The position numbers and the translations under genes were made by a program. Source: Hydrolagus colliei (lineage: Eukaryota). From it: DNA of 64,000 nucleotides. The notes under the pieces were generated by a model that had not been told where the DNA came from, made no database searches, and worked only from the letters and a program-made list of their open reading frames with translations. The DNA is taken from positions 9,610,001-9,674,000 of the forward strand of contig CM068757.1 of the NCBI GenBank assembly GCA_035084275.1, in the 5' to 3' direction. Each line of letters starts with the position of its first letter. Within the stretch, counting starts at the first letter, position 1. This document shows positions 5,994 to 43,400 of this stretch, one piece after another.

Positions 5994-6027
<34 letters not shown>

Positions 6028-15094: not shown

Positions 15095-15925
15095 CTGATT
15101 GGCTCGTATCAGCGCCTCCGCACCTCAGGCACTGGCAACATCAGCATTTAAGGCTGCACTCTCCACCTCTCAAAGCCAGTCAGGAATTTGGGCGTCTTGT
15201 TCGACCCCGAATTGTCCTTCCTCCCCCAAATCTGCGCCATGACCGGTACAGCCTTCCACCACCTCTGCAACATTGCCAGTCTCCGCCACCACCTCCCCAC
15301 CATGCTGCCGAAATACTCATCCACGTATTCATCACATCTAGGCTTGACCACAGGAATTCTTTCCTGGTCAGCCTTCCCAGCTCCTCCCTTCGCGAGCTGC
15401 AGATCATTCAGAATTCTCTCCTGTGTCCTCTCCTGCACTAGACTCCGCGACATCACATCACTCCCACCCTCGCCCCTGTCCACTGGCTCCCCATCCCCCA
15501 GAGGATCAAATTCAAGATCCTCGTCCTCACTTTCAAGGCCATTCACGGCCTTGTCACCGCCTATCTCTCCGACCTACTATCTCCCTATCAGCCTGTCCGC
15601 GCTCTCCGCTCAGCGAGCTCCACGTCTCCCGGCCGAACCGCCCTACCATCGGTGGCCGGGCTTTCAGCCTCTCTGTCCCCGCACTCTGGAACTCCATCCC
15701 TCAACCCCCTCGCTTTGCTTGCTCCCTTTGCTCCTCCAAGGCCGGTCTCAAGACCTTCCTCTTCGACTCTGCCTTCTGCTCCCCTCCGCACTCTCCCCCC
15801 TCTCCCCCCTACTCTCCTTCCCCGACCCTTCCCCCTCTGCTCGGGTCCCGACCTAACTGTTCAGCGCCTTGGGATGTCCTCCCGTCGTGAAAGGTGATCT
15901 ATAAATGTAATTGTGTTGTTGTTGT
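15095..15925 (+). mobile_element. L2-clade LINE 3' fragment
   Basis: RNLGVLFD..LSF, RLD..NS, HITP.L..LHWLPI..RI.FKI remnants; tail aaaggtgatctataaatg...(ttg)n. Confidence 0.85.
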
Positions 15926-16231: not shown

Positions 16232-16323
16232 CACAGCCCCAGTCAGTGCGGCTGGAAGCTGGAGAGAGAGAGAGAGACACACAGAGAGAGACAGACATGT
16301 TGAGGGGGACAAACTCGGCTATA

Positions 16324-16396
16324 ATGTCCTCACCCGGTGGAGCTGCCAGGGCGCTGACCCTCGTCCTGATCCTTGGGGCTTGGATTGCAGGATCAG
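16324..16396 (+). CDS. NCR3LG1: Leader (signal peptide) exon MSSPGGAARALTLVLILGAWIAGS
   Basis: 73 nt, hydrophobic core, phase-1 donor g|gtacag. An in-frame upstream ATG at 16297 is an alternative start. Confidence 0.85.
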
Positions 16397-19300
16397 GTAC
16401 AGAAAATGCGCAAACGTTAGACTGATTTGCTGCTGGATCCCACCGCTGAGCGAGACACAGAGACACACCGCTAACTGGAGGCTGCCCTGGGGGGGGGGGG
16501 GGGGGACACAGCCTGAAGGGTCTGTGTTTGGGGTTTAGCTGATAATATCAAATATCAAGGGCCTCTTGGATGGTAAACTGGCGGCCCACGGGCCGGATTC
16601 CTTTATCAATTTATTTGTTTTGAACGTTATAATTGGAAACAGCGACAAAATTTCTCTGGGCTGATGGTGATTCTCCCCAGCAAGTTATAAGGGGAAAAAC
16701 CAAGCCCTGTTTTGTGTGGGAGGCGAGGTCTTCAACTTAATGTTCAACAAGGACTCTCTTCAATCTGCACAAATTGTATTGTTGCTATGTGCTGTATATA
16801 ATATTAAGTTACAGTGAAGCACTGGGGCAGATACATTGGAAAAATTGAAGAGTCTCAGTTATGAGAACCAATAGCGCCCTTGAAGAAGGAACCATCTTGG
16901 CGCAATTAACAAGGGACAGTGAGGCTAGGGAAAAGAGAGTGACTGAAGGCGTGGTTGAATTGAAGGGTCTTGAAACTTGGCTTGATGGAGGCAAGGGAGT
17001 GAGCAAGGCAAAGGGAATGTGGGATGGAGTTATAAAGAGTGGGGGCAGAGAGGCTGAAGGATGGTGGAGCGTGCAGGGCGGAGGACACAAATGAGGCCAG
17101 AGCCTGCTGAGTGGAGGAGAAGACAGATCCAATTGGAGTTAGCACGTCTCAGACACAGGGAGGAGCAAAGCCGTGGAGGGCTTTGAAGGTGATGAAAAAA
17201 TTATTTTTAATTCTATAATCTGGGGAATGGGAGCCAGAGCTGCCAAGTCAGGGTGATAGGGTCAAGGATTCCGGTGTGGGAGAGAATACAAGCTGCAGGT
17301 TGTGAATGACTGGCTGCTTGAGGAGGGAAGAGTTGGGAAACCGATGAGCAGGAATTTGGAGTTGTCCAATCTAAATGTAAATAAATGCATGGATGAGGAA
17401 CTCAGTGGGTGGGGGGGGGGGAGAGTCAGGCGATTAGTACATGTAGGTAGGGTGCCATCGAGGGTGGAGGCAGAGAGATGGAGTTGGGTGTCATCTGCAT
17501 ACATTTGGAAGCTAACCCCGTGTAGATAACATCGTGGTGGGGTATGAGCAGCTTGGAGAGGTGGGGAGGGGCCAGGGCGGGAAGTGATTTGAAAGTGAGA
17601 AGGAGGATATTCTAATCAATCCATTCTGCAACAAGCAGCCAGTGAGGGCTTGCAGACACGGGAGTAATGGGGGTGCGGAGTCTCAAATACGTGAGGCACA
17701 GTCAGCAGAGTTTTGACACAAGCCTCAACCCCTCATTCTCTGGATAACCTGTGGGGTACAATTCTATAGGCACTAGCTGTGCTCCAGTGCTCTGCCTAAA
17801 TGGCCATTAATTGCAAATGCACATGAGCATGCTGTTTAACATTCACTCCTTGGTATTGTCACCAAACCCTTGGGTAGGACTAGATTTTCTTGTTTCAATA
17901 TTCTTGAAGCAGTAGCTCATCCCAACCTATGAATTTTAACGTGCTTCTAATCTCAGATAATCAAACCTGCTATTCTGGTGTTTAAAATGCTCAGTTGTCA
18001 TCAATGTTTTGGAATGCCCCTTGTTTTTACACAGATGCTTTGGCGATGACAATATTTAAAGACCCATTGGAGGTCTTATTGAATGAAGATGTTGTCCTTC
18101 AATGTAACGTAACCCTCAAGACTCCGGAGGAGCCCAGCCTTGAAATAATTGCAGTTCGGTGGTTTTGGGGGTTGAAGGAAGTGTATGCATACAATGGAGG
18201 GATATTTAAAGCTATCAGAAACGGATCAAAGATAATAGTAGAAAATCTGCAAAGGGGAGATGCCTCACTACATCTTCCTAAGGTTCAGATATCTGAAGCA
18301 GGAGTGTACAAGTGTATGGTTTACTTGATGCCGACCATATCACAAGAAGAAAAGAGTTCAACCTTAATAGTGTCAGGTAAGCACAGTAATCTTGCCGTGT
18401 GTGTTGTGTGTGTTGTGTTGCGGCTTGTAATGCTGTATTCAACAGATCACAAGATAAGTTGAGATGATTCGCCCACAAATATACAGTCAATTCACTTTAC
18501 AGTATATTCTGTGAAGCGCTTTGGGACATCGATAAGATGTGAAAAGTGCTGTATCAAATACAAGAATTATTATTATTATGAAGATGGCTGTTCAGACCAT
18601 CTGAGCTCAAGCATCCAGGAAACCCATCGTCACATCACTGCATCAAACTATTCCAGTGTGCTATCTTCAACCACCCTTCTGTAAGGGTCTGGTGCAATAG
18701 TCAGCAATGAACAGCACACATTAAAAATTAAATAACACAAGTTTATTGCTTGGTAATAAGGGAAGTAAATTAAATAAGGACACGGACAAAAAGGAATCAA
18801 TATAAACAAACTTATTCTCTAAAATTAGTAACTAACTCATCTATTCCGCATACACGTACTGCTCCCACCCCGCAGTGTATGGATGCGTGAGTGTGTGAAT
18901 ATACTACTGGGTTCTGGGTGTCTGTCAATAATAATAATCCTTAAGTTTATATAACACTTTCCACGACTAATTGTTGCCTCAAAGCGCTTCACAGAATACA
19001 CAACGTCCTAAGTTGGGACAGGAGCAGTGGGGGAAGGTTCGTGGTTGGGGGAAGGAAAGTAGGAAAATTAACCGCATTGACCGTTTGTGGGTGAAACGCG
19101 GCAGCCAAATTGCGCACAGCGGTGTCCCACAAACAGTCGTGGAAATGGAGCCAGGGGAGAAAGGGGGAAAAGAGGATAAGAGGGAGAGGGAGGCGAAGGT
19201 GGGGAATAGTCAGATAGGAAAAGGGGAGAGAAAGGTGGCAAGGGAGAGAGGGAGGGCAAGGTGGGTGGGGGGCAAAATCAGAGAGAAAGGGGGGCAAGAG

Positions 19301-22300
19301 GAAGAGGGAGAGAAGGGGAAAAGGGGGGAGAGAAAGTGGGGAAAGGGAGCAAGGGAAGAAGAAGGGGGGGGGGGGGGGGTAGGCCGGGGCAGGGGGGATT
19401 AAACAACAACAATAAACAACAAAATCAACAACAATAAACAACAAAAGCAATAATATTAATAACAAAAATAATAACCATCAAAAATAGTCCAGAAGCACCA
19501 CCTCAAGGTCCAGTTTCCCTCTGCTTGTAGATTTCCTTGACTCTTTGCTCTGCCCTGCTTGCCTTTTACTCAACTTCTGTATGTCTGTCTCTCTTGCCAA
19601 GCTGTGTTTTAGGTTCGTTGATTGGGCTGATATTCTGCTTGACAGTCAATCAAGGCTTCTCTCTTTCTCTGTCTCTCTCACTTTTGCCAGTTAACCCTTC
19701 ACTGCTATTATCCAGGCTGCAGTACCTGGACAATAACAATTGTCCTGGCTGATCACACAACAGCTGGACTCTCTCAGCAGCTAGTCTGACATTTGGTGTT
19801 GGCTGACCACAAACAACCAGACCTCCCTTCTTCTGACTGTTGGCTCACTGCTCCACTGTGCACTGTCCTCCTGCTAGCCTGACCTCTCACTCTCCTGCTG
19901 GTTCTCTTTCCTTCTTTTGATTGTTGAAATGATTGTTGGTTCTTGGTTGATTGTTGAAATGATTGTGCCTTTACCCCTCAAACCTTCCTATCTTTGTACC
20001 GTTTTTGCAGCATCAGGACAATAACCAGATTTCTCCTGTTAGAACTGGCCATGCACCCACAAGAATCTGTTTATTGATCTTTGTCCAAGTCATTCTCAAA
20101 CTCATTAAGTTTTAAAAAGAATGTGTATTCTTAATCATTGTCCCTTAGTACTCCATAAACCCTTGCACCTGACTAGGTCAGTTCAATCCACGACTGTTTG
20201 TGGGATACAGAGGGTTGGTGGATCGCTACTCGGGGCATTAATCCCATTACAAAAAGTTCTAATAATAATTTAGTGCTGAACACGTCTTATCAATGTCTCA
20301 AAGCTCTTCATAGAATATATTGTAAAGTGAATTGACTGTATATTTGTGGGCAAAATGCGGCAGCCAATTGCGCACAGCAGCGTCCCACAAACAGTCGTGG
20401 ATTGAAATGACCAATTTTTATTATTTTTTAATTGGTAATTTTGTCATTGGATTTGAGTTTCTACCTTGGATTATTTTACTAATTTCAACTTTAAACCTTT
20501 AACCTCTTGTTCTACCATCTTGGTGCATCATGTTTTACACATTTATGCACCATCTGAGAAATCGTCTCTCAAGACTGATGAGCCCTATCTCATTTTGGCT
20601 GAAAGTCCCAGTTAATAAACAACCCATCAGTCAGAGTGATTGTTATTAACCCCTCTGCTTAAGCAACCATTGATGCCATCTAAAATGGGTCAGATGAACT
20701 GGTAACCATGCATTGGTCTCCAACACACCTGTCCATTTCTATCTCGGTGAGATGCTTCATTTGGGGAAACACAGTTACCCCATTCTTCTGTTGACCTATA
20801 GTGATGTAAATTGTTTCGTTAACTTGCCAAGATTAGATGTATGTAGCTCACTGGTATTAGTTCATAAATCTTGGGGTTGAAATTCAAATTAGTCTTAATT
20901 CATATGGTATTGTTGTTGTTGTTTGTTGTTGTTGTTATGTTGTAAAATCTAAGTGTTGTGCAAAATTGTTCCATTGAATTAGAAAGCCATTACTTCTAAG
21001 AAGTGGGAATCATTGATTTTTTAAGGAATTTTTCTTAATTTTGTGCAATTCAAAGTTCCAGGGTAGACAAGGTGGAATTTCTGTCTGCCTGTTGCTGTGT
21101 CTGAAGTAAATACAAGTTGTATTATTATTCTCACGTGTGTGTATGTTGTGGGTAGGAAATAAAAGTGCTGCTTGAAAGACAATACTATATTCATGTAAAG
21201 AAATGTGATAACCTCTACAGCTCAGCCAAACGTCACCTTGTCTCCACATCGCATCAATGTAATCAATGGTTCAGTAGAAGACTTGATGTGTGATGTCAAT
21301 GGATTTTACCCTGAGATGCACAGCATCAGCTGGGTCAAGGTATCGCGTGGTGTGGAGACGGAGATTACAACAGATATCTTGACGCAAGATTTAGTTATCA
21401 ATGAGGACAAAACATTTAATCTTTCCAGCAAGTTGAAGATCAGACCAACCCTGGCTGTCGATGGTGATAAATACAGGTGTGTGGTGAAGCACAGAACATT
21501 CAGTGATAGTCTTACACTGGAGGCAGAGCTGACTGTGGGAATTGAGAATCCCCAGGATCCTGAAGGATATGGACCTGGAGCTGTTATTGGAGGTGTAATC
21601 GGTGTTGTCCTGATAGTGATTGTCGTCTTTGTTTTCGCGGCACTTTACTTTTGGAAGAAAACGAAACAAGGTAAGGATCTTCACAGCCCTAAACAACAAC
21701 GGCAGACGTGGGGGTGATTTATTATACACTAAATGGTCTTGTGCACATTTTCTATCAATAGAGAACAGTCAGCTGACACTTGATCAACTGAAATAGATAT
21801 TGTCCTAATGACAGTCAAAAAGTTTGTGTCGAGGCCTCTGCTCTCTGGGACATTTACCCGAATCTTTTCTAAAGACTTACCTGTTTGATCGTGCTTTTGG
21901 TCACTAGCAGCATTCCCTGCTTCCTCTTTGCACCTCACTCAGTGATCCACACTGTAAAGTCCTTGTAAAGTACTTTGAGATGACATCAAAAGATACTGCA
22001 TGAGGGCAAATTGTTGTTATAACTGAACTGTGTTGATCATTACCCAGGTTTCTTGAGAGAATTAGAATATTTGATGCTACTTTTTGTATGTTCCACAGCT
22101 CCTCCCAAGATCAATGAAATCAGCAAACCCACTCGCTTTATACATGGGCAGCGCGTCAATCTGAGTTGGGAAGTGACTCGTTTCAAACCAAAAGAGATAG
22201 AGATCATGATATTTCTGACGAGGAAAGGAAAACAGCCACTGGAGCTATTTGTCTGGAAATTCACAAAGAATAAAAACGAACCAGGTCAGGTTGAAGAAGG

Positions 22301-25300
22301 TTTTCATCTCCTGAAAACAAAAAATGGATCTGACGGGGATAATTCGTTCTCTGCTGACACCCCACAATGTGATCAGCTCGAAAATGGGACCTTCAGGGTA
22401 AAGTGTCACATATGGTTCTGTCCTGATGTATCTGAGGACGATGGAGCTCAAATAACAATGCAAGTTCATCACAAGGCTCTGAAACAGCCTCTCAAAAAAT
22501 CTGTAACTTTAGATGTTGAAGGTAAGATTTGCATTGTGCACCTCCCTACCTCCACCTAACCACACCCACATGTCAATGTGCAAACAATGGCAAGAAATAA
22601 AAACATGGAAATCCGGGGTATTGATCCTTTCTAATAATAAAAAAAAAAAATTTGGTCACTCAATCCAGAATTAGAGTGTGAAATTGGCTGACGGGTTACG
22701 CCCATAAAATATGCAGTCAATACACTTTACAGTGTATTCTGTTGAGTGCTTTGAGACGTCTCAACAGTGGGATAAGGCGCGATATCAAACACTAATTATT
22801 ATTATAATTAGAGGAAACAAGGTTATTCACCCCACCGAGCCTATGCCGGTGGTCACTCATCCACTGGAGCTATCTCCCCGTATCCCAATTCTCTACTCTT
22901 CCCCCTTACCCAATGATGAGCTGCTTCAAAACCACTGCAACATTGTTACTATGTGAGCTCCAAGAGTTACCTTATGCCCAGTAACCCTGTGTGGTCAGTT
23001 GACGGATTGACTCAGTTGGTGACGCTCTCTCCTATGGGACAAGGTCGTCAGTATTTCAATTGGCATCTGAAAACCTGCCCTTCACCTCAGGCTATATAGA
23101 AGCTACCATAATCTCTGTCACTCTTACTGTGTGTCACTCTCTCTTTCTTTCCCTCTCAGCTTCAGAGAGAGAAGAGAATAGATTGAGAGGGTAAACAAAA
23201 GGGGAGAGAGAAGAGAGAGAGACAGGGAGGGAGAAAGAAGAACACATAAAAACACAGACAGTTTGTGTTCATACAACTTTTATATTAACATGGAAGTTCT
23301 CAGACAATAATAGCCTTGCACATGACATATCACCTGATCATGCCTTTGAGACTTCACAGAATAAACTGTAAACAGAGGAATGTGGAGTAAGGAAACTTGC
23401 ACAATATTTCGCCTGCTGGAAATCGTACCCTGGTCTCTCGCTTATGAGCTACAGGACTCCACAGAATATACTGTAAAGCAGATTGATTGTGTAATTTGTG
23501 TGCGACGAGCAGCAGCCAATTGTGCACAGCAGTGTCACACAAATAGTCATGGATTAAGTGACCAATTTATTATTTTTTAATATTTTTGATGCAATTATTA
23601 TCCCTGAAATACAATCTGAGAATCTACTAATAACCAGGTTCCTACATACGGATGGGTAAACAGAGGCGTGTGGATTAAGGAAATTTAAGGCCCACCATTT
23701 CCAGGAATCAAACGAAATCTGAGATTGAAGTGCGAATGGAATCCAGGGGGTCAATGTGAGCCCCTAGATTGATTTTATGATTTGTAACTGGACACAGTGT
23801 GGCCAGTTGTAGAATTACAGCATAATGTTAATAATGTTTGTGGAGTCCTGTAGCTCAGTGGTTAGAGCACTCGCCTTACAAGCGAAGGACTTGTGTTCAA
23901 TTCAAGCATGGTGAAACCTTGGGCAAGTTTCCTTGCTCCACATGCCTGATAATAATCCCTCAAAAAGAAAATTGGTCATTTTAATCCACAATTGTTTGTG
24001 GGGCACTGCTGTGCGCAATTGGCTGCCGCAATTCACCCACAGTTAATTCACTTCACAGTATATTATGTGCAGTGCTTTGAGATGTCTTGAAGACGTGAGA
24101 AGCGCTATATAAAACACAAGGATTATTAGTAATAACATGTTACTTGTGTTTACAGCTCCTCCCACGATGACTGAAATCAACATACCCTCTGGTATTGTGC
24201 ACGGTGCCAATGTGCCTTTGACATGGGAGGTTAATGGCTTCAACCCACGGGCCATTGTAATTGCTGTATTGGTGAAGAGGAAAGTGGATCAGGAAGCAAA
24301 GCAACTGTTTCATTGGCAGATCCCAGAGAAAGAAAAGCAGCCAATCCCACATGATATTACCCCCAGCATTGATACACAAGTTAACTCCTTCACTGCTGAG
24401 GTGGCAACGATTGTAAAGACAGATAAAGGGACTTTCAGTGTGAAGTGCAGCGTTGCCATGTGTGCTGATGTAATCAGGGATAATGATGCTGAATTCACTG
24501 TTGAAGTTAAACATCAGGCTGTGGATAATCCTCTCACTAAAGCTATAACATTATGTGTCGCAGGTAAACTCTACCTCTGTATTTTCTCGCTCTCTCTGGT
24601 GCTAATATGTGAGTTGAAGTGCAGCATGCTGCTGTGTGTGTCCCTCTATGCTGCAATAGTTATTTTTGTTTGTGACAGTGACGTTCTATCACATAGACAT
24701 CTGTGCCGACAGCCACCCCCCTTCCCCTCTCTATCCAGGCTCAGTGGATGACTCTGTCACTTTAAATCGCTCAAACACATTAGCTGAAGTGAACAATGCC
24801 ATATTAATGCATGTTGTTGCTGTTGTGTTTGGGGGCAGCTCTGTTGCAGGTTGATGGGGAGGTGATGGGCTCTGTGGTAACGGTCCAGCTCAACATCAGC
24901 CTGAAATCTCATCTGTTTTCTTGAGAAACTTAAACAAATCGATTTTGAGATCCTCAGACTTGCCTACAATTCACCTCTTGCTCTCACACCTCGCTACCTC
25001 TCCAATCTGCAAACACCCACTTCTCAACCCACTCCGTTCGCTTGCTCAAACCTTTGGCATCTTCCTTGACCTGTCCACTATACTATCGGCAGCCAGGCAT
25101 TCAACAACGATACCCTGAACCTCTGAAACTGCCTTCCCCAAACTCCAGCTCGCCCTCCATCTCCATCAATCGTTGGATTACACATGGAGGTTCTACTCTC
25201 TGACCATGCCTACCATCACCTCCCCTCTCTCCCCAGCTCAGTATCAAACTACAATATTGCGAAGCTCATCAAGACGTTACCCTGCATGAAAGTTGCTATA

Positions 25301-28300
25301 TTAAATGGAAGTTGCTATTGTTGAAAGAGTGTGTAACTCTGTCTGAAGCCTTGCTGCAGATTCTCATTGTAAATTGTGTGTGAGGCTGTGTGGTGTGTCC
25401 TGTAACTGGATTTAATCTTTACATGATATTTGTGTTTGTGTTATAGCTCCTCCCATAATTACTGAATGGCCGGCAACCCCTGATAGGACACATGGTGAGA
25501 TCTCCACTCTGAGTTGGTCAGTGATACGGTTCAATCCACGTCCCATTGTAATTGCTGTATTACTGAAGAGAAAAGGGGAGTCGAGATCACAGAAGCTGTG
25601 TTATTGGCAGACAGAGAAAGAACAACCAGCAGGAAATAAACCAGTAAACATTTCTGTTAGCCGTGTCACAAAGGATGACTCCATCAATCCAGAGATGGCG
25701 ATGATTGTACAGGGAAAAAATGGGACTTTCATTGTGAATTGCAGTGTTACCGTGAATGCTGATGTATCCAGGGATGATGGCGCTGAGTTCACTGTTGAAG
25801 TTCAACATGATGTTCTGGAGAATCCTCTCACTGAATCTGTAACATTACGCGTTAAAGGGGGTAAGTGCTGCCTCTGTCTGTTCTCTTCTCTCTCTCCCTC
25901 ACACGTCAGTGTAGAAATATTCAGGTGAAGGTGATGATTTTACAAACGGGAGTTTGAAATGATCTGTTAATCTCCAGAGTGAGTTTTGCAGCTGTGTGTG
26001 AAGAGAGGCCACATTATTCAGGGCTCCACAGTCACATGGTCAAAAGGGATGTATTATTTTGTACACAATAAATAATCTGGTGATTTCTGACAAATACGTA
26101 ATGTTAAAATATAAAATCGAATGTGTATATATGCACTCATATGGGTGTCAGCTCAGAACATGAAGCACTCTAACCTCTCGTCCACAAGGTTGTGGGTTCA
26201 CATCACATCAGGACCTGAACCTACAGTCTAGTAGGGACTTGTAATAAGGAAATGAAATGATGATATCTTAAAGAATTTGATTGTTGACAATGGTTTCAAT
26301 TTCAAATAATAATTCCCTTTATTACCATCGAGGATGACACTGCAGTGTGTGCTGGGGGGGGGCTCTGTAATGCTGGAGTCTGTTATTTCAGATGTTAAAC
26401 CATGAACTCATCTGGGTGTTCAGCTAAATGGCCGGCAACCCCTGATAAGACACACTTCAGCACTAAAAGAGTTGGGAATTTCTCCAGTGTTTTGTCCTCC
26501 ACCTCTTGCTCTATGTGTATGTCTAGCTCTCTCTCTGTCTCCCTTTCCCCCTTTCTCTCTTCCTTTCTCTTATAATCAGTCTGGATAAAATGTAGAATTT
26601 GAAATTATTTCTTTGTCAAAAGGCCAGTGTGCACCCTGTCTGGGGGCAGATCTTGCAGGTTACTGGAGGCTTAGACAGGCTGTGTGCTTATGATGGAGTT
26701 TAACATCACTCTACAGCTCCAGCCTGGTGCCCTCTGCCATGACTTGCAGGCTTTTCACTCGTTTCTGTGGATTCGGTTTCCAATTTGTATCTGACACAGA
26801 CATGGACTTGAATGTTTTTATATGGATTTGTCATTTTGTTTTGTAGTTCCTCCTAAAATTACATTTCCAAACCAAAAGAAAATGAAACATGGTGAGAATG
26901 CTGAGCTGCAATGGGCAGTGACTGGGTTCACTCCTGGGAAGATCTCGATTGTTTCCAGTCTACGGAGGAAAGGAGAGGAAGTAAGACAACTGTTTCACTG
27001 GGAAGTTCCAAATAAGGAAGCATTTCAAAGGAAGAGAATCCCCTGGAATCTTGAGGACAAATCAGAGAGATCCAACAATGTTGCCTCCTTCACTGCAGTG
27101 TTGCCTAAATGTGAACACGACAACAAAGAAGGAACCTTCAGAGTAAATTGCAAAATCAGCATGACTCCTGATGAGCCCACGGATGATGGAGCTGAATTAA
27201 TTGTTCAGGTTCAGCATGAGGAATTTCCTGATTTTTTCACTGACAGTTTAAAAATAAACATTGCTGGAGGTAGGTTCTGCCGTCAATATTGTGTCCTCTC
27301 TGTCCCATATGCTCTTAGGCAGTGTTTAGAATAAAGTAACAGTTTCCTCCACAATGGTTCAGCAACTGAGATCACCACTCAGTGAAACCCAGAGCCTCTC
27401 AGTCCAGAAGGTGGCAGGATATGCCATCTGAGAAATCTCGTCATAGTGCTTAAGATTATCCAAACCAGAGAGTTCATATGTGCCATCTACATGTGGAAAT
27501 TTCCCTTTTTCCAGAATGGAATGCTCACAGTAGTAAACAAACTTGGATCAAGAGCTTGACTAACAGGACTACCTCAGGATTGATTTTACTCCGATATTGT
27601 CAAGTGCGTTATTGTTCAAACAGAGAGTGAGTTTGTCCCAGTGTCCTGGCCAACTATCCCCGTTATAAAATCTGTCACTTAATTCATTGCTATTTACAAA
27701 ATTTATGCATCCTGTTTACCTGTTACCAAAGAGTATCAGCTGCACGTTGGCAAGATATAAAGCTTGGAGATCACAGAGTATGTGCTGGAATACTGCGGGA
27801 ATTTAAGAAGGGAAATGCGCATAGTTTAGTATTTCCAGTTAGGACCACACCACCTGTTAAGGCTTTGGTTTGCAGGGTTAACAAGACCTGAATAGGTAGA
27901 ATCCCTGCTCTCAGTGACTGGTCTTGCTGGCCCAGGCCTGCTGATGAGCCAGGCCGACTGGTTTATAATCAGCAATGGCCTGAAGAGCTGGGAAACCACT
28001 TGGAACAGGAACTGAGACTGAGTCTCAGGATTGATTTGGTTCCGATAATGCATTCTCAAGTGCATTATTGTTGAAACAGAGAAATGAGTTTGTCCCAGTG
28101 TCCTGGCCAACAATCCCCGTTATAAAATACATTACTTAATTCACTGCTGTTTGTGCGGCACTGCTGTGTACAAGTTGGCTGACACATTTGCCTTCAAGTA
28201 CAGAGCCAGTGAACTTCACACACAAATTCTGTGATGCGCTCTGAGACGTCTCAGTGATGTGATAAGGTGTTATATCAGTTGTAAGAATTATAAGGATTAT

Positions 28301-31300
28301 TAGAATGTTGTAGCCATCTTATCTCAGAGGAGATACTGCACACCTCTGTTCCCCCTCCCCCCAGGTGGGCTGAGCTGAGCTGAGGCAGTAGCTGTGCAGC
28401 TCTGTTTGGTCTCTGTGGGTGAATTGTCTGCCCACATTGACAGTCTGGGCTGAGATGTGAGAAACCCTGGTAATTAATAGAGAAAATAATCCAAGCTCAC
28501 CTCCTGATCAGCACCTTGGATACCTCTCACCTTCACAATATCGGACAGGTCAGATCTCTGCAGCTGGGAAGTACACACACCACACAGAGGGTTTACAGGC
28601 TGAGTAACATTATTACATAGTGTAAGTTATACAGGACTCATTTACATTTAGGTTCCACTGGGTGCTGTGTTCATGTGTCCGTCCGGCTCACTTGGCAGTG
28701 CTCTTGTCTCTGTGTCAGAAGGTATTGAGTTCAAGCCCCACATTGACACACTGGCTGTCACTCCAGTGCAGTGCTGCAATGCTTATATTGTGTTTCTGTT
28801 TGATAGCTCCTCCTCAAATTAATGGACCTTATCCACCCGGGAAAATTCTGCATGCTGTGAAAGACACAGTGACATGTGTAGTTACTGGGTTCACTCCTGG
28901 GAAAATGACCATAATTTTCAGCCTGAAGAGGAACGGGCAGCAACAGCAAATACAACGACTGTTTCACTGGGAAATTCCCAACAAGGAAATATTTCAAGAG
29001 TCGATAGGAGGAGCTTTTCCTCTGCAGGACCGATCGGATAGAGACATTAAAGATGCGTCCTTCAATGCTTTGGTGCCAAAGTGTGAACCTCTTGGCGATG
29101 GGACTTTCAGAGTAAATTGCATCATTGATATGATTCCTGATATTGATATGGATAATGGAGCTGAATTATCTGTTGAGGTTCATCATGATGTTATTGTTGG
29201 CTCTCTCACTAATACTGCAATATTACTCATTACTACAGGTAGGTTCCTCTATCATTGTTGTGTCTCACTGTCTCTGTGACAATGTTTAGGACATTGTAAT
29301 GATTTGCTCCCGATGGCCCAGCAGCTGAGGTCATTGCTCAGTACAGGTTGAGTCGAGTCTCTCAGGCCAGAAGCTCTGAGATTCAAGTGCTGGTCTGGGA
29401 GCTGATCTGAGCTGACCTGGGCCAGTAGCTGTGCTGGTCTGTTTGTATGTCAGCCTGGAGCTTTGGTAGCACTTTTGCCTCTGACTCAGAAGGTTGTGAG
29501 TTCAAGCCCCACGTCAGGACTTGGAATCACATCGTCTAAGCTGACACTCACTCCCAACGCAGTGCTGGATGTCTGTGCATTATCGGTGGTGCCGTCCTTT
29601 AAATGAGATGTTAAACTGACGTTCTACCCGCTAGTTCAGGTAGACATTGTAGATCCCATAGCGCTATTAGAAAAGAAAAGGGAAGTTTCTTCAATCCCAC
29701 AACTAACATAGGTCACTCATCCCATGGTTGTTTCTGGGACATTACAGTATGCAAACTGGTTGCTGTGTTCGCCAACAAAATATACAGTTAATCCATTTCA
29801 CGGTATAACCTGTGTAGCACTTTGAGACATAATAAGGTCTATTTCAAATGATAGGATATTAGAGAATATAATCAAAGCTCACGATCACCACAGTGGATAT
29901 CTCTCACCTCAGATGTATCAGGTCTCAGATGAGATCTCTGCAACTGGGAAGCAACAGCCTTAATGCAGTGTGCACAGTATGCAGAGGATAAGACCATAAG
30001 ATTTAGGAGCAGCATTAGGCCTCTTGAGTCTGCCACGCCATTCAATAAGATCATGGCTGATGTTCTAATCTAACTCCACCTGTCCACCTTATCCCCATAT
30101 CCCTTAAAACCTTTATTCATAAGAAATCTATCAGGATGTAAGTACTCGGAGTACATTTTACAGGATGTTGTAGTTTTTTCTGGGGCAGCTCTATTGTAGG
30201 TTGATGGAGAGATGTTGGTGCTCTGTGGTCATGGTGCAGCTTAACGCCAGGCTACAGCATTGTCTGCTGTCCTCAGGAATAATGCGCAGATCTGTCTGAA
30301 GGTTTGCAGCAGATTTGGATTGTAAATATTGTGTGAAGCAATGCGTGGGTGATGCAGTGTGTCCTGTAACTGGAATATAATCTACATTTGCTGCTTGTGT
30401 TTGTTTTATAGCTTCTCCCACAATTACTAAAATCCAGGTCCCCCCGAATATTAAGCACGGTGCCACCTACACTCTGAAATGGTCAGTGACTGGGTTCCAT
30501 CCACTGCCCATTGTAATTGGTGTAAAACTGAAGAGAGGAGGGGAGACGAATGAAAAGAAGCTGTTTCAGTGGCAGACGACAGAGAAAATTCCACCACCAG
30601 GAGTGATGCCAGTAAGGATCCCTATTGAATCCCAATCAAAGGATGATCTCATCACTTCTGAGGAGGCGATGATTATACAGGAGAAAACTGGCAATTTCAG
30701 AGTGAACTGCAGTGTTACCATGGTTCCTGATGTATCCAGCGATGATGGCGCTGAGTTCATTGTTAAAGTTAAACATCAGAACAAAGCTCTCACCGAATCA
30801 GTAACATTACACGTTAAAGGCGGTAAGTGCTGACACTGTCTGGTCTCCACACTCTCTCCCTTGCACATCACTGTAGAAATGTTCTGTTGAATGCAATGAC
30901 TTTAACAACGAGAAGAGTTTGAAATGATCTGTAAGTCTCGAGTGAACATTTGGTCAGTGTCCGGCGAGGGTTGGGAGGAGCGGGTGACGGGGCTTCGGCC
31001 TCGGCCGTCCGGGCAGCGGCAGCAGCAGCAGCGGACTTCAGTGCTGTGCTTACCTTCTGCCGAACCTAGTCTGCCTCACTCCCTGCCTGCCTCCCTGCCG
31101 CTCTCTCTCCCGGGCTGCCGGCCTGCCGCTCTCTCTCTCTCTCCTGGGCNNNNNNNNNNNNNNNNNNNNNNNNNNNNNNNNNNNNNNNNNNNNNNNNNNN
31201 NNNNNNNNNNNNNNNNNNNNNNNNNNNNNNNNNNNNNNNNNNNNNNNNNNNNNNNNNNNNNNNNNNNNNNNNNNNNNNNNNNNNNNNNNNNNNNNNNNNN

Positions 31301-34300
31301 NNNNNNNNNNNNNNNNNNCCTCTCTCCCTCTCTCTCTCCCAGGCTGACGGCCTGCCTCTCTCCCTCTCTCCCTCCCTGGCTGCCTGGCTGCCTGCCTCTC
31401 TCTCTCTCTCCCTAACTCCCTTCTGTCGACAATATCATTGAAAATGCTTCCGTTTTTTTTCACCAAGAAAAGGTCAAAAACGAGGGGTGCGCCTTATACG
31501 CGGGTGCGCCTTATACGCGGAGATATACGGTATATTCTGTGAAGAGCTTTGAGATGTCTAGAAGACATTAGAAGCACTGTATCAAATGCATTATTATTAT
31601 AAGTCACGTCACAGTCAGATGTTCAATGGGGATTTATTATTTTGTACATGGTGGTAAATAATCTGGTGATTTCTAGGAAATATTTAATATTAAAACACGA
31701 TATCTTACACCATTATATGTGCATAACTATGGGTGTCAGCTCTGAGCATGTTATCCTGTTGTCCCTTGTCCAGAAGGTTGTGGGTTCACATCATATCAGG
31801 ACCTGAACTTCCAGTCTAGTGCAGAGACTTGTAATAAGGAAATGAGTGGATCATATCTTATAAGGAATTTAATTGTTGATGGTTTCAATTTCAAATGACA
31901 GTTTCCTTTATTGTAGACTTTCTCAAGTCAATGGATATACTAGTACTAGGCAGTACAGTATCTAGATAAAGTAGTGCCTAACTCAGGAGAAGCAACCGTG
32001 ATCAGTTACCCATCGCTTGGGAGAACTCAGGCATTCTCTTACTTATCAGTTTATTTTCCTCGTCTCCCTCTCTCTCCCTCTCTCACTCTCCCACGTTAGC
32101 AGTCCATACTTATATGCAGCCTGTTTCAGGAATGTCTCATCGTTAACCCCAAACGTTCCAAGTTTGTTCCCAGGTGCAAGGTACATAACTGAAGTTATAA
32201 ACACCCGTACATTAAGTTTGCTCATCTTGCTCATTATGCACTTGATGTACCAAGAAACAATATCTGTGAGATCAGTCAGCTTTTTAAGATTGGGGATTTG
32301 AACAAAATCAACAGTATCTGTGAGTTGAATTAGATTGTGTCTCCTGAAAGTTGTTTTCTCACACTCAACTTTCAGTTAATCTTTACCCAAGATTACGCCT
32401 TGTACGAGAATCAAACCTGACACAAGTGCTCTAACCACTGCCCTACAGGACTAAAACAATCTTGAATTTTGGTGTAGATCCATATCATGTCTAGAGGACT
32501 ATCTCAAAGTGCCTCACAAGATTCAAAGTGAAATGGAGTAACTGTATCAGTAGACAAATGTGGCTTCACGATAGCACACAGCAATGTCTCACAAACAGTG
32601 ATGGAGTGAGTGATCAATTGTATTTGGGTATTTGATGGCCAAAACACCAGAAGAACTTTGTTCGCTTTTTGAGTAATGCCACATGTGCTTTAATGTCCAC
32701 CGGAAGAGGCAGGTGGTACTTCGGATTAACATCCATTCGTGGGATGTATCTTTGCAGCTGGGAAGGAACAGCCTTAATATTGTCAACACATTGTGTAGAG
32801 GATATAAAGACTTCAAGTAACATATTACAGTGTGAACGTTTTACAGGATGATGGTGCAGTTGTGTCTGGGGGCAGCTCTGTTGCAGGTTGATGGGGAGGG
32901 GATGGGGTTCTGTGGTCAGGGTGTAGAAATATCACTGTAGAAATATCGAGGTGAAGAATGGCTTTATTCACAGCTTCACACTCACATGGTCAAAGGAGGT
33001 TTATTATATTGTACACAGTAAATAATTGGTGATTTCTGACAAGAATGTAATATTATAATATTAAAACCATTATATATGCATGTACTGTATATGGGTGTGA
33101 GCTCAGAGCATGTAGCATCTCTTGTCAGAAGGTTGTGGGATCGCATCACATCAGGACCTGAACTTACAGTCTGGCATGACACTGTGCAGTGTGTGCTGGG
33201 GGAGGCCTGTAATCCTGGAGATGCCGTCTTTTGGTTGAGGTATTGAACCGTTGTCCCGTCTGCCTGTTCAGCTAAACGTTAAAATTCCCACAGAATGATC
33301 AAAAAGAGACGGGAGTTTCTCCCATTTTCTTGGCCTCTATATATCTCCAACTGTGTGTGCGTCTCTCTCTTTATGTCTCTCTATCTCTACATCTCTCGTT
33401 ATCTCGCTCATTCCCTCTTTCGCTCTTGTTTTCTCTTGTATTTATTTGGGGAAAAATTTAGAACTTTATTATTCATTTGAATAATGAAATTATTAAATTA
33501 TTAATTTGTTGAAAGGCCAGTGTTCACTCTGTCTGAGGGCAGCTATTGTATGTTACTGGAGGCTCAGACAGCGTGTGTGGTAATGATATAGTTTAACATC
33601 ACTCTACACCTCCAGCCTGGTGCCCTCTGCCATGACATGCAGGCTTTTCACTTGTTTCTGTGGATTTTGTTTCTAGTTTGTTTCTGACACAGACATAGGC
33701 TAGAAATGTGGTTGTCTATATCACACAGGTGTATCCCACAAATATTCCCCGATTGAGTGACCAGATTATTATATTTGTTGAGCTATTATGTCCTGCAGAG
33801 AGTGATTGGCCAATCCACGAACCATCTAACATCTGCTTACTGCTGGGTAAACAGAAGCATGTGGAATAAGGAAATTTTTGCCCTGTAGAAGAATCTACCC
33901 TGAGGTTAGATTGAGAGGCGAGTGCTCTAACCAATATGCTACAGGACTCCAATGATAAACGTTGCATTGTGGTACAGCTCCTTATGATGTCTTCATTAGA
34001 TTCACTGTGAAATGGAGTAACTGTGTATTTGTAGGCAAATATGGCAGCACAATTGATAATGTCTCACAAGCAGCCATGCTGATAATGTCTCACAAGCAGC
34101 CATGCTGATAATGTCTCACAAGCAGTGGTCAATTGTATTTGTGGTGGGGGGGATGGGAGGGGGGGTGGATTGATGGCCAGGACACGGGGAGATCTCCCTT
34201 CTCTTTTCGAATACAGGTAGTGCCCACTTAACGAAGGGGTTGGGGACTTCGAAACTCCTCGTTAAGCGAAAATTTCATTAGGCGGGAGGGAGTTCGCTAC

Positions 34301-34767
34301 TGTGTTTCTGTACATGAAGAAAATCAGTTTCGTTCCCAGTAATGCCTTGCGCGTAGCCTAGCGCCCAGCGCTACTAATTGCGGTGTACCAACGATGCCAT
34401 AAGGTAGGTAGAACTGCTATTGAAGGCTGCTATTGAAGAGAGAGACTGTGAGTGAGATTGTGACAGTGAGAGACTCAGAGAGAGAGAAAGAGAGAGAGAG
34501 AAAGAGAAAGAGAGAGAGAGACTGGGACGGAGAAAGAAATAGAGAGGGAGAGAGAGAGAGAGCGACCGAGACAGACAGAGGGAGAGAAAGAGACACAGAG
34601 AGAGAGACTGGGTAAGAGAGAGAAATAGAGAGAGATAGAGAGAGAGAGACTGAAACAAACAGAGAGAAGGAGATACAAAGAGAGAGACTGGGACAGAGAG
34701 AGAAATAGAGAGAGACAGACAGTGCAACCGAGACAGACAGAGAGAAAGAGATACAGAGAGAGAGACT

Positions 34768-34798
<31 letters not shown>

Positions 34799-37700
34799 CG
34801 TGATCGAGACAGACGGAGAGACAGAAAGAGACCAGGGAGAGAGACCGGGACAGAGAGAGAAATAGAGAGAGAGAGAGCGCATGACCGAGACAGACAGAGA
34901 GAGAGAGAGAAAGGGACACAGAGAGAGAAAGAGACACAGAGGGAGACTGAGACAGAGAGAGAGAGACTGAGAAAGAGAGAGAGAGGGAGAAACAGACAGA
35001 CAGAGAGAGAGAATGTACCTTGTATCGCTTTTGGAAACGATCAAGCCGCCCGCTGCTAGCAGCAAAAGTCTCCGCTGGCTTTTTCACAGTAGCTTCATAT
35101 AGTTGCCTAGCATCCTGCCGCTTAACCTCCTCTCATACTGCACTGCTTTGTCTTGGATTAGGTGGCATGCTGAACTAAGTGTGTGTATGTATGTAGCTTC
35201 CTCGACTGAGACTGCGCTTGTGTTGCGGAGGCTGCCGGGAGACGAGAAGCGCGTGCAATTTAAACTTTCTTTATAGCGAGCGCAGCCTTCGCTAAGCGCA
35301 TGGGGGGGTACAAATAGAAACCATCTTTATAGTGAAGCTTCATTAACAGGGCGTGTGTTAAGCGGGGGCTGCCTGTAGTGACACAGGATTCCTTAACATC
35401 CACCTGTGGAGGCAGATAGGACTTTGGTTTAAAATCTCATCTGTGGGACGTGTCTGTCGTGGGAAGGAACAGCCTCAATACTGTCAGCACATCGTGCATG
35501 TATTGTAAAGACTAGTGTAAAGAGTAACAGTGTGAATATTTTACAGGATGTGTAGTTGTGCCTGGGGGCAGCTCTGTTGCAGGTTGATGGGGAAGTGATG
35601 GGCTCTGTGGTCAGGGTCCAGCTTAACACCAGCCTGCAACATCGTCTGCTGTCCTCAGCAATAGTGTGCAGCTCTGGATGTCTGAAGCTTTGCTGCAGAT
35701 TTAGATTGTAAATTGTGTGTGAAGCAATGTGTGAGGCAGTGTCGTGTGTCCTGTAGCTGGAATATAATCTTGACATGCTGCTTGTGATTTTTTTATAGAC
35801 TCTCCCACAATTACTGAAGTCAATATACCCTCTGATATTAAACACGGAGCCCAAACCACTCTGAGCTGGTCAGTGACTGGGTTCAATCCACAGTCCATTG
35901 GAATTGCTGTATTGCTGAAGAGAGAAGGGGAGCAGAACGCACGGCAGCTGTTTTGTTGGCAGACAACAGAGAAAACACAAGCAGAAAGAAAGAAGTCAGT
36001 GAAGATTCCTGTTACCTCTCACGTTAACGATGTCTCTATCACTTCGAAGGAGGCAACGATTGAACGGGAGACAACTGGGAATTTCAGTGTGAAGTGCAGC
36101 CTTACCATGGTTGCTGATATATTCCGGGACAATGGTGCCGAGTTCATTATTCATGTTGAACATCAGACTATTCTTGGGAAACCTCTCATCAAATCTGTAC
36201 CACTGCATGTTAAAGGGGGTAAGTGCTGCCTCTGTCTGGTCTCCTATCTCTCCCTCACACATCACTGTAGAAATATTGAGGTGAAGAGTGGCTTTATTCA
36301 CGACTCCACACTCACATGGTCAAAGGGGATTTATTATATTTTACGCAGTAAATAATTGGTGATTTCTGACAAATATGTAATATTATAATATAATATTGAA
36401 ACCATTGTATAGTCATAAATATGGGTATGAGCTCAGTGCATGTAGCATCTCTTGTCAGAATGTTGTGGGATCGCATCACATCAGGACCTGAACTTACAGT
36501 CTGGCATGACACTGTGCAGTGTGTGCTGGGGGAGGCCTGTAATCCTGGAGGTGCCGTCTTTTGGTTGAGGTGTTGAACCGCTGTCCCGCCTGCCTGTTCA
36601 GCTAAACGTTAAAATTCCTACAGCACGATCAAAAAGAGAAGGGATTTTCTCCCATTGTCTTGGCCTCTATATATATCTCTCTGGCTGTGTGCGCGAATCT
36701 CTCTCTTTATGTCTCTCTATCGCTATATCTCTCATTATCTCGCTCACTCCCTCTTTCCCTCTTCTTTTCTCTTGTATTTATTTTGGGAAAAATTTAGAAC
36801 TTTATTATTCATTTGAATAATTAAATTATTAAATTATTCATTTGTTGAAAGGCCAGTGTTCACCCTGTCTGAGGGCAACTATTGTATGTTACTGGAGGCT
36901 CAGACAGGCTGTGTGCTAATGATATAGTTTAACATCACTCTACAGCTCCAGCCTGGTGCCCTCTGCCATGACATGCAGGCTTTTCACTTGTTTCTGTGGA
37001 TTTTGTTTCTCGTTTGTGTCTGACACAGACATAGGCTGGAAATGTGGCTGTCTATAGCACACAGGTGTATCCCACAAATATTCCCGGATTGAGTGACCAG
37101 ATTATTTGTTGAGCTATTATGTCCTGCAGAGAGTGATTGGCCAATCCACGAACCATCTAACATCTGCTTACTGCTGGGTAAACAGAAGCATGTGGAATAA
37201 GGAAATTTTTGCCCTGTAGAAGAATCTACCCTGAGGTTAGATTGAGAGGCGAGTGCTCTAGCATGTGGATTAGGTGTTGAGCCTTTCAGACCAGAAGCCC
37301 CAAGTTTCAAGCGCTGGTCTGGTAGCTGATCTGAGCTGTATGGGACAGAAGCTGTGCTGCTCCATTTGGTTTCTGGGACCCTATGTGTGAAGAGTCTGAC
37401 GTCGTTCACAATCTGGACTGAAATGTGAGAAACCCAGTGATTAAGGGAGAAAATTATTAAAGCTCATCTTACGATCAGCAACGTAGATATCTCTCACCTT
37501 TCAGATATTGGGCAGATCAGATATGATAATAATAACTTGCATTTGCGTATAATGCCTTATATCTGAAGGATGGCTTAAAGTTCTTAATTTAGTGTGAAAT
37601 GGATTGATTGATTGTGTATTTGAAGCCATACTCGGCAGCACAATTGCATACAGCAAAGTCCCACAAACATTCATGGAATGAGTGAGCAATTTTATTCGGT

Positions 37701-40422: not shown

Positions 40423-43400
40423 ATATATAATTTTAAGCCAATTTTTGGTGTGGAAGCTGCACTTCTTTATCCAAGTCTCTTGTTCACCAATGTGGTCAAG
40501 AAGCAGTGAGTGGGAGAAGGAATGTTTTATGATAGTTTTTGTGCTATAAACCAGTGGTGGTGTTGCAGCTTGTGAGTTGAAGAAAATGTAAAGTAAGTAA
40601 GTATAAAGATATCTGTCGTAGCTGCTGCACTTCATGCAGGACAGTCGAAAGATAAAGAAACAAGAATACTCCCAAGAAGAAGAAAGAAACACAAGTTTTG
40701 CTGTGGTAAAATACCTTTCTGTATCTCACACATTGCTGTATACCGTATAAACTTTTCTTAAAAGGTTTTCTGTGAGCTTGATTATCTCCGTGTCCATAAA
40801 CATAACAAGACTTAATGTCAAAACAGGTCAATCGTTTCAATTCAATGAAACATAAATAAATGAAACTAAGGGAAGCAGCAGTGGGAGTTGCAGAAATGAA
40901 GAGGGTAGGAATCATATTCTGCTTGTCAAACAGTGAAGTTTTTGGGGCGTGGGAGGTCAGTCTGATGTCCAACACATATTGAAACCCACCACCAGGCTTA
41001 GGAGTAACTGTGATTTCTATACATTCTATCTGTATGGAAATCCCAGAGATAGATTGTTGGAACGCCATGCACACTGTCTCCCTGGAGGGATGCATTCTGC
41101 TCAACTAATTCTGGAAAGTATGAGGCGCAGATGGGGAAGAGCCATTCTATGGGGAACATGCGTTGGGGTAACTGCTGGAGTTTAACCAGCTAAAGCCAGC
41201 ATAGCTTGCCATTGATATTGCTGCCTGGCAAGCTTTCTCACAACATATCCAGCTAGGACCACCATACCGGATAATAGCCAAGCCTTTACATACCCCAGAG
41301 TGGACACACGTAAAGCAAAAATATGAATAATAAATTGGTCACTAAATCCCTGACTGTTTGTGGGACATTATTTGTGTGCAATTGGCTGTCACGTTTTGCC
41401 TACAATATATATAATCAATATATATATGTAAATGTGAGATGGCTTGAAGACATAATCGGTTAGTATATCAAATTCAACGATTATTATGACATATTGTATG
41501 GAATGTAACTATCCCCAAAACCAGGCCTGGCATCTCTCTGAGCCACTGGTGATCTTCAGACAGTTTGTTGGATGGGAAGGACCTGCGCCTGCGCCTGTCT
41601 GGGTTGGGCACTGATCAAGGAGCCTCTTTAAGGAAGGAATGTCACTGATTGTGTGAGTCTCCGGACAAGCGATGCCTGGAGCCCAGAAAGGAGTCTTTGC
41701 TTCAAGTGCAAATGAACAGTGATGTTTCAGGGCTGTGACTGGGTGTTGGCAGAAGCCAGAACAACACGAGAGGAATGTCAGGGCTGTGTGTGCTGTGGTC
41801 ACACGCATCCCTGAGTCTATTGCTGGGGTGTCTGATCTCACCGGCAGGTAAAGTGTGTCAGCGGAGGCGGCCAGAGGTGTCCAAGCCAGAGGGTAGAGCA
41901 GCCTCCCCGCTCCCTTTGTAACATGAACAGCCGGAGTAGCCCCGCTGTGTGTTAATGAGAGTCGCTGCAATGGGCTTCGTTATCACTCTGGAAACTGAAC
42001 CTGATGTCAACTTACATCACAACCCTCACACACCTGTACATCCACACAACATATACGCACAACATATGCACACCCACAACATATACACACACCACTCACA
42101 TGTAACATACACACACAAACCATATATACACACACACAAACAACATACACATGTTCACTCACCAGCTAACATTAACCTATGTGTACTTTGCTGGACTTTC
42201 CAAAGCTTGGAAAGTGTTGAATCCTCAACTTGCGAAAAAATCATACGACTTTTCTATATTCTGCTAAATGACAAGTTTAAACTCCTGTCTGGGTTGGGAA
42301 CTGATCATGGAATTGATCCAAAGTGGCCGGAGATGCCGAAGGGACATCGATTATTGTAGAGCAGTGATTCTCGGTCAGGCGGCTGAGTTTCAGAGGATTT
42401 GGTAACGATCCGATCAATATACTAATGGGCTTCTTGTCACCATGTGTTGTATGTAACCTTAATGTTTGTTGGCAGTGTTTGCTGACACAGTAAGTACAGT
42501 ACTGCCACCTCCTGGTAATAATACAATATATAATAATCCTGTATTTAATATAGCGCCTTATTATGTATAGACACTCACACACATATACATTGTCACATCT
42601 GGATCTTTGGATCTAACATTAGGAAACCCAACCCCTCGCTCAGTTGATTTACTGAATAAATCAGAGCTTCTCTCAGAAAATGGAACAGAAGTTGGCGAGA
42701 TCTGTTTGTGGATTACAATGTATTGTTTGGGTGATTAATATATTGAAATTCCCTTTGGTTTAGATGGTGGATATTAAGTTTCAGTTTTCCAGCCGCCAGG
42801 CGGATGGTTTGTGAGGATAGCGCGATCCCAATCTCTACTTGCTACACACACACACACTACACATCCACTGAGTGTTCGCAACAGCCACAGTCATCGTCAC
42901 GACTTTTGATTCTGACAACCACATTGTGAATATCGATCAGCTTTGTCAGTCACTGAACGGTGATTAGAAATGTATCCGTTTTGCAGAATTTTGGAGAATC
43001 ACCGTGAATTGTGTTTATGCCCTTCAGGCCATTTGTTCGACAGTAAATTAGCTGTAATCTTTGCTGTGATCTTAGGGTTAATGTATAAGTGCTTTGCTGT
43101 AGTCTGTTATTAAACGCTCACACACTAGTTGTGTTTTTCACTGAGGTGCTTCGGCTGCATGTTTCCCAGATTCCTGCTCCGTGTCCGTTGGTAGAAAGAA
43201 TCCCAAACCATGACACACCTCACCGACAGTGAACCCATGGCCTGTGCCCTGTGAACAACTACAGCAAGTTACATTGGTATAGCTGGATGTGGCTTCATAA
43301 ATGTGACTTCTTGTCAACGCTGAGTAATACGGCTGATATCTTCCAGGGGGCATCCTGTTTAACTCATGCCAAAGATTGGAGACCCCAGTGTGTGCGTTGG

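Follow-up and report, generated by a model that had tools for sequence, protein, structure and literature searches.

The 64-kb window analysed here (positions 9,610,001 to 9,674,000 of contig CM068757.1, Hydrolagus colliei assembly GCA_035084275.1, numbered below from its first nucleotide) consists of vertebrate DNA, in which related genes are clustered in tandem on the + strand. One of them, termed gene B, was defined by tblastn with domain sequences, followed by splice-site scans. Its model comprises a candidate leader exon, a V-set exon, an exon coding for a C1-set domain and a transmembrane (TM) segment, seven tail-domain exons (D1 to D7), and a candidate short C-terminal exon. The seven tail exons, in which the initial annotation had recognized a remodelled immunoglobulin (Ig) domain, very probably encode the post-TM tail of a B7-H6 (NCR3LG1) family member with type I membrane topology; because it is located after the TM segment, this tail is most likely cytoplasmic.

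The leader, or signal peptide, exon proposed for gene B (16324-16396, +) was retrieved by a scan for ATG, hydrophobicity, and donor site. It encodes MSSPGGAARALTLVLILGAWIAGS, ends with a phase-1 donor, and resembles the leader MSAPGGASEGTTLLLILWVSIAGS of Callorhinchus. It is followed by the V-set exon (18035-18376, +; Pfam V-set, 1.3e-7), and by a single exon (21221-21670, +) that brings together a C1-set domain (Pfam C1-set, 5e-12), a 23-residue hydrophobic segment, and a KKTKQ stop-transfer sequence. This extracellular C1 domain retains the canonical Cys, Trp, and Cys, as previously proposed. The donor scan identifies at the end of the TM exon a consensus phase-1 donor (CAAG/GTAAGG, the slash marking the exon boundary), and the predicted join to D1 is in frame (...FWKKTKQ/APPKINEI). 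The best PDB matches of the V and C1 ectodomain, searched with phmmer, are human NCR3LG1/B7-H6 structures (6yjp, 3pv6, and 4zso, E ~1e-25), with CD276 coming next. An ectodomain closest to B7-H6, a candidate leader exon, and a TM segment followed by KKTKQ together place gene B in this family. Human B7-H6, the NKp30 ligand, likewise possesses a V and C1 ectodomain followed by one TM segment. Its cytoplasmic tail, however, is not made of Ig domains and has been described as gag-like with short signalling motifs, whereas that of gene B is predicted to consist of seven Ig-like domains spanning ~980 residues. No tyrosine motif of the immunoreceptor tyrosine-based inhibitory or switch type (ITIM/ITSM) is found in the predicted spliced gene B protein. 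The candidate terminal coding exon (39166-39200, +) has a phase-1 acceptor, ends as ...G-EPTTAAGSEGQ-stop, and is followed by ATTAAA at 39282; it is putatively assigned by positional homology to the annotated terminal exon of the Callorhinchus gene.

The seven tail exons all lie on the + strand, and their coordinates, as obtained by tblastn and splice-site scans, are identical to those first reported. D1 (22099-22521) carries LSWEV, FRVKC, and DDGAQITMQVHH, and belongs to type B, which has an extra D-strand Cys. D2 (24156-24563) carries LTWEV, FSVKC, and DNDAEFTVEVKH, and D3 (25447-25860) LSWSV and FIVNC. D4 (26847-27269), again of type B, displays LQWAV, PKC, and FRVNC, while D5 (28807-29238), the third type-B domain, retains the B-strand Cys (VTCVV) and has no F-strand Cys. 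D6 (30412-30822) carries LKWSV and FRVNC, and D7 (35799-36218) LSWSV and FSVKC. Each exon has a length that is a multiple of three and phase-1 splice sites at both ends (AG acceptor, GT donor; 7/7), and encodes one domain of ~140 residues.

The residue pattern reported in the initial annotation is for the most part recovered. The B strand reads LxWxV in six of the seven domains, with a TGG codon, and D5 keeps its Cys (TGT). The canonical F-strand Cys position is occupied by V, I, or M in all seven domains, and the canonical C-strand Trp position by V, I, F, or S. LF/CxW is present in the C' strand of all seven, and FxVK/NC in the E strand of all seven as well as in the three tail exons of the upstream gene (10/10). 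The DxGAE string ascribed to every F strand is exact in five domains, D1 having DDGAQ and D2 DNDAE, although the lack of a Cys in this strand holds throughout. The PxC-x11/12-C motif, read as an added Cys pair in type-B domains, is in fact one extra Cys (P-x-C, in D1, D4, and D5) along with the invariant E-strand Cys. The insertion is confirmed, the tail domains being ~34 residues longer than gene B's own C1 domain. Sixteen columns are invariant among window exons that have diverged by up to ~1 synonymous substitution per site, which excludes chance as the origin of the motifs.

A collinear counterpart of gene B is found in Callorhinchus milii (LOC103173843; protein P0159, locus L001), with the V, C1-TM, and D1 to D5 exons in the same order; because of this collinearity, the two genes are treated as orthologues. 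Per-domain identity ranges from 60 to 75% (64% for D1, 75% for D2, and 60% for D3), and the introns of the two loci have a divergence of ~0.17. In the NCBI model of the Callorhinchus protein, the TM-to-domain junction (...FWKKWNQ/APPKITEI) falls at the same place as that predicted in gene B. The Callorhinchus counterpart of D4 has a Cys where D4 has a Trp. Beyond D5, Callorhinchus displays three D4-like exon copies, and the window the D3-like copies D6 and D7. The best match of D6 is domain 3 of the Callorhinchus protein, and D6 is therefore a lineage-specific copy.

The tail domains escape current profile libraries. In a Pfam scan, D1 to D4, D6, and D7 have no match, and D5 matches C1-set with an E-value of 0.0022 and 18.7 bits, against a 21-bit cut-off. 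C1-set is nevertheless the sole recurrent weak match family-wide, with 13 of 42 tail domains at E <= 0.1 (best 1.4e-5), compared with one of 42 for I-set (E = 0.027, none of the seven window domains) and none for V-set. Searching the PDB with single-domain sequences returned only sub-threshold matches, to Ig constant domains (E >= 0.07). In a profile-profile comparison, hhalign aligns the tail domain over its full length (2-138 versus 3-106) with the 69 extracellular C1 domains of the family (probability 98.1%, E = 7.4e-14), and only partially with the family V domains (60%, 8.8e-5). This alignment superimposes the Trp on the canonical B-strand Cys and V/I on the canonical F-strand Cys, and positions the extra residues, an insertion of 30 to 35 residues, between strands C' and D. 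The conserved Cys, for its part, falls at a non-canonical, inward-facing position of the E strand, two residues C-terminal to the classical position of the hydrophobic core.

AlphaFold2 models were obtained for D4 (predicted local distance difference test (pLDDT) 88.9, predicted template-modelling score (pTM) 0.84) and for D7 (pLDDT 92.3, pTM 0.86). Both are Ig sandwiches in which strands A to C lead to a long C', then to small additional strands from the insertion, and to D, E, F, and G; the W, C, and V/I residues are located mid-strand in B, E, and F, respectively. Compared with known structures by Foldseek, the two models do not side with C1 domains: their best matches, of only moderate quality, are V-set (E ~3e-5, TM-score ~0.55-0.6), as are nearly all of the top 50 (VH, nanobodies, MPZL1, and SYG-1 D1). 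A descent from a V-set or I-set domain, with convergent C1-like motifs, would account for these matches, for the long C' strand and the C''-like strands of the models, and for the likeness of D-x-G-A-E to the D-x-G-x-Y-x-C of V- and I-sets. Such a descent is nonetheless quite unlikely in view of the profile-profile and Pfam comparisons above. The domains display GFxPxxIxI and VxH, both hallmarks of C1 domains, and intermediates found in relatives keep the C1 Trp or the F-strand Cys together with the C' Trp. The V-set matches are explained by the insertion, which adds the long C' strand and the C''-like strands. Of the C1 fold originally proposed, the descent is supported, and the predicted topology is not plainly C1: on the basis of these models, the tail domain appears to be C1 by descent, with a predicted topology shifted toward V-set and no close solved structure.

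C1-set domains are defined by their disulfide and Trp core. Compared with Ig C1-set (PF07654), the tail domains share profile homology, GFxPxxIxI in strands B-C, VxH at the end of strand F, and the one phase-1 exon per domain. They differ by lacking both the B-F disulfide and the C-strand Trp (a B-strand Cys persisting in D5 alone), and by their insertion, their extended C' strand with a new Trp, their E-strand Cys, their sub-threshold Pfam scores, and a probably cytosolic location. In the proposed architecture, the B-F disulfide is absent, the old B-strand Cys position being taken by Trp (or Cys) and that of the F strand by V/I. A small hydrophobic residue sits at the old C-strand Trp position, the new Trp is carried by the extended C' strand, and the conserved inward-facing E-strand Cys is probably a free thiol. 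With the B-F disulfide lost, hydrophobic packing would be all that holds the fold, in keeping with a reducing compartment. The tandem I-set domains of titin, telokin, and myosin-binding protein C are likewise Ig sandwiches of the reducing cytosol devoid of a structural disulfide, and some titin domains carry conserved, redox-active Cys. These, however, belong to soluble sarcomeric proteins, whereas the present array is attached to a surface protein of the B7 family.

A profile built from the ten tail exons of the window (D1 to D7 and the three of the upstream gene) was compared with 1.84 billion representative proteins, and matched 248 clusters at E < 1e-3, of which 138 at E < 1e-10. Names were checked for 30 clusters. 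They include sharks (Heterodontus, Scyliorhinus, Stegostoma, and Pristiophorus), rays (Narcine, Amblyraja, and Hemitrygon), Callorhinchus, the reedfish Erpetoichthys, the coelacanth, many frogs, a newt, and a caecilian. Relatives are thus present in chondrichthyans and amphibians, and neither amniotes nor teleosts occur among the 30 clusters named. A separate word-indexed protein search added a relative from the basking shark Cetorhinus; with the coelacanth tail domain as query, the word-indexed search returned only this domain itself. Twenty-nine of the 30 clusters are uncharacterized or hypothetical proteins, and the remaining one, a Bombina protein with a long Ig tail, has been named NCR3LG1 by NCBI. 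In the full-text literature searched, no mention of cytoplasmic Ig domains in B7-H6 homologues or of the LOC identifiers was found, although an earlier description may exist. The lack of a Pfam model at threshold, of names, and of a paper agrees with the suggestion that this is an uncharacterised Ig subfamily.

Two layouts are observed in this family. In the long form, found in the coelacanth, reedfish, frogs, and cartilaginous fish, V, C1, and TM are followed by one tail-type domain and then by about six ordinary C1 domains. In the form seen in the window, and in cartilaginous fish, the tail-type domains are multiplied in tandem. Many of the ordinary C1 domains of the long form (proteins P0013, P0017, P0020, P0022, P0025, and P0005) keep the Cys-Trp-Cys set, and others have lost one Cys.

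In a set of 127 profile-matched domains of near-full length, the residue at the B-strand position is a Cys in 70, a Trp in 43, and a Phe in 8. The E-strand Cys, invariant within the window as initially stated, is not so family-wide, being carried by 89 of the 127 domains. When domains having an F-strand Cys are set aside as canonical C1, the tail-type domains have at the B-strand position Cys in 54 cases, Trp in 52, and Phe in 8, and an F-strand Cys in none, this absence being by selection. The B-strand Cys is hence kept in about half of the tail-type domains, including D5 and the Callorhinchus counterpart of D4, and the loss of the disulfide was stepwise, not concerted as first suggested. Trp at the B strand also occurs in ranid frogs (Rana and Lithobates). 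Since D5 and the Callorhinchus D4 counterpart keep the Cys and ranids have the Trp, the change from Cys to Trp is a later and repeated step, a recurrent single-base change (TGY to TGG) posterior to the loss of the F-strand Cys.

Frog tail domains mostly possess a B-strand Cys together with an E-strand C-x-C. In Trp-type domains, the first of these two Cys positions is occupied by V/I, and the residues found at the old Trp site are smaller. This covariation agrees with a Trp that takes over core volume, and it is the one support for the suggestion of the initial annotation that Trp fills the vacated core. It also suggests that the B- and E-strand Cys may interact in Cys-type domains. Some frog domains (e.g., residues 278-430 of P0005) display three inward-facing Cys on neighbouring strands, a trio that could form a disulfide within the sheet, act as a redox switch, or bind a metal.

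The assignment of the tail to the cytosol, also part of the original proposal, is supported by the phase-1 donor of the C1 and TM exon, by the Callorhinchus junction, and by features of the family as a whole. In 90 of 135 family proteins, the TM segment is located ahead of the first tail domain, at a median distance of 13 residues; most of the remaining 45 are fragments, and a hydrophobic segment after this TM is present in only one of the 90. The canonical Cys-Trp-Cys set is found in 118 of 133 pre-TM C1 domains (89%) versus 198 of 420 post-TM domains (47%), counts that are drawn from phylogenetically non-independent sequences. The observed/expected ratio of N-glycosylation sequons is 1.69 on the N-terminal side of the TM, compared with 1.16 on the C-terminal side; in gene B, five sequons are found in the 232 residues before the TM versus eight in the 982 residues after it. 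The tail domains are, on this evidence, most likely cytosolic.

Several points weigh on the other side. The cytosolic assignment is based on rules of topology and on gene models predicted for other species. The ~47% of post-TM C1-like family domains that keep both Cys and the Trp are unexpected if disulfides never form there. Furthermore, an isoform skipping the C1 and TM exon would stay in frame, and may send the tail to the secretory pathway. Through such an isoform, or through a separate transcript, the tail would be extracellular or luminal and its E-strand Cys engaged in inter-domain or inter-chain disulfides, in line with exons that are all phase 1-1 and allow an in-frame V-to-D1 splice, with the conservation of this Cys, with the extra Cys of type-B and frog domains, and with the N-x-S/T sequons of the tail. 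We consider this very unlikely. The TM is contained within the C1 exon, with no phase-1 donor between the two in the stretches scanned (~30 nt being unscanned), and it is always ahead of the tail family-wide. Sequons are not enriched in the tail, and loss of the canonical Cys is ~5 times more frequent after the TM than before it. A separate downstream gene for the D exons was also considered and rejected, no leader-like exon being found between the TM exon and D1 (21671-22098). In-frame ATGs do occur just 5' of some acceptors; they add only eight to nine residues, which are translated polypyrimidine tract.

The evolution of the tail was assessed by comparison with Callorhinchus. The ratios of nonsynonymous to synonymous substitution rates (dN/dS) were obtained with the NG86, LWL85, and YN00 methods and by maximum likelihood, and loops and strands were separated with three methods. 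The dN/dS is 0.35-0.42 for the V exon, 0.8-1.25 for the C1 and TM exon, and 1.18-1.36 for D1 to D5 pooled, with 1.4-1.7 in the loops of D1 to D5 and 0.95-1.27 in their strands. The pooled tail value (~1.2) is not different from 1 (Fisher p = 0.30), a result that weighs against the proposed interpretation. A ratio of about 1 indicates that most residues are under little or no purifying selection. However, the five collinear exon pairs (D1 to D5 versus Callorhinchus L001 11439-19388) contain no stop and no frameshift, and their four indels are all in frame, whereas neutrality would predict ~15 nonsense mutations and, at the intron indel rate, ~31 frameshifts (P ~4e-7 and ~4e-14, respectively). 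The exons have therefore been kept translatable, with a fixed structural skeleton. Most surface residues turn over at or above the neutral rate, a pattern that fits either a spacer or scaffold for which folding is the sole requirement, or loops under diversifying selection. That the tail exons are instead a decaying or dispensable leftover of exon duplication, spliced out or tolerated, is very improbable: the near-neutral dN/dS versus Callorhinchus, the similar values among paralogous exons (0.5-1.3), and a copy number that varies, with one exon deleted, are set against the missing stops and frameshifts, splice sites intact in 10/10 window and 8/8 Callorhinchus exons, the sixteen invariant columns, and a domain type that spans the deepest splits of jawed vertebrates.

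The array itself is labile. As the exons are all phase 1-1, the duplication, loss, or skipping of a domain preserves the reading frame. Changes seen at the locus include a clean exon deletion and recent copies that are 92-98% identical, and the terminal amplifications differ between the two chimaera genomes. The upstream gene A ends with three tail-domain exons, U1 (88-504, +), U2 (3839-4255, +), and U3 (7158-7577, +), all three located by tblastn and splice-site scans, the last being a duplicate of D7. Gene B has no equivalent of U2: its flanking intron is joined at ~32922/32931 (window ~32866-33033 versus 3602-4400). This clean deletion of ~640 bp removes one domain and leaves the frame intact. 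A 10.9-kb segment is present in two copies 98.3% identical (4298-15232 and 32931-43875, offset ~28.6 kb). It covers the intergenic region along with the last tail exon (U3/D7) and the terminal exon, and was duplicated either by a very recent segmental event or in the assembly. Should the D6 donor go unused, the frame stops after ...KGGKC at 30824-30832, and similarly after D3 and D7; several domain exons could thereby double as last coding exons, giving shorter tails.

An assembly gap (N run, 31150-31318) interrupts the D6-D7 intron, 328 nt downstream of the D6 donor and 4.5 kb upstream of the D7 acceptor. The sequences on its two sides belong to one dispersed CT-rich repeat, of which ungapped copies are found at ~1172-1622 (inverted) and ~48900-49176. 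Neither an exon nor a reading frame spans this gap; its length being an estimate, a hidden exon is formally possible. In the sequence actually read between D6 and D7, a sensitive tblastn search revealed no such exon, and it is this search that showed the deletion of the U2-like exon. A second assembly gap (2687-2830), in a CT/GA microsatellite of the U1-U2 intron of gene A, leaves the exons unaffected.

Elsewhere in the window, the V-set exon of the next gene of the cluster (61388-61723, +) marks the start of gene C. The leader-exon region is present four times (16251-16450, 44260-44443, 46878-47018, and 56467-56668). The copies at ~44.3 kb and ~46.9 kb are not followed by a V exon, and look like orphans left by duplication. 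Reverse-transcriptase fragments (Pfam RVT_1) of the long interspersed nuclear element type, at 57364-58699 (-), 59853-60323 (-), and ~45.1-46.1 kb, fill a ~12-kb insertion that separates the V exon of gene C from the duplicated region upstream. An open reading frame of 333 residues (52274-53275, +), with stretches rich in Cys and His, is possibly a transposase remnant; no Pfam family matches it at E <= 0.001.

Functionally, the best guess, a speculative one, is that the tail is probably a modular intracellular scaffold of variable length. The array would act as a scaffold or spacer coupling a natural killer (NK)-ligand ectodomain to intracellular partners, through surfaces that evolve fast. 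A role as an intracellular sensing or decoy module rather than a passive spacer, its loops being engaged in an arms race with pathogen factors that remove the ligand from the surface, is an unlikely alternative that draws on an analogy with butyrophilins. BTN3A1 and its relatives also associate a B7-like V and C ectodomain, a TM segment, and a folded intracellular domain, although this module is a B30.2/SPRY domain and that of gene B is Ig-like. The B30.2 domain of BTN3A1 senses an intracellular ligand and alters what the ectodomain shows to lymphocytes; by analogy, binding inside the cell might change the display of the gene B ectodomain to NK cells, and the buried Cys, or the frog Cys cluster, might report redox stress. 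If the sensor role were true, it would provide the first case of a C1-derived Ig module used as a cytosolic receptor, dating back to the common ancestor of jawed vertebrates.

C1-set domains are a hallmark of extracellular adaptive immunity, as found in antibodies, T-cell receptors, the major histocompatibility complex, beta-2-microglobulin, and B7 relatives. Here, a C1-derived domain has apparently moved behind the membrane, lost its disulfide, and been multiplied into arrays on a homologue of an NK ligand. It forms an unnamed domain family missed by current profile libraries, and offers a natural experiment in which an Ig fold would have been re-stabilised without its disulfide, with Cys, Trp, and Phe variants at the same site in related domains. 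It also raises a new question, that of the intracellular role that B7-H6-type ligands may have had before amniotes replaced such a tail.

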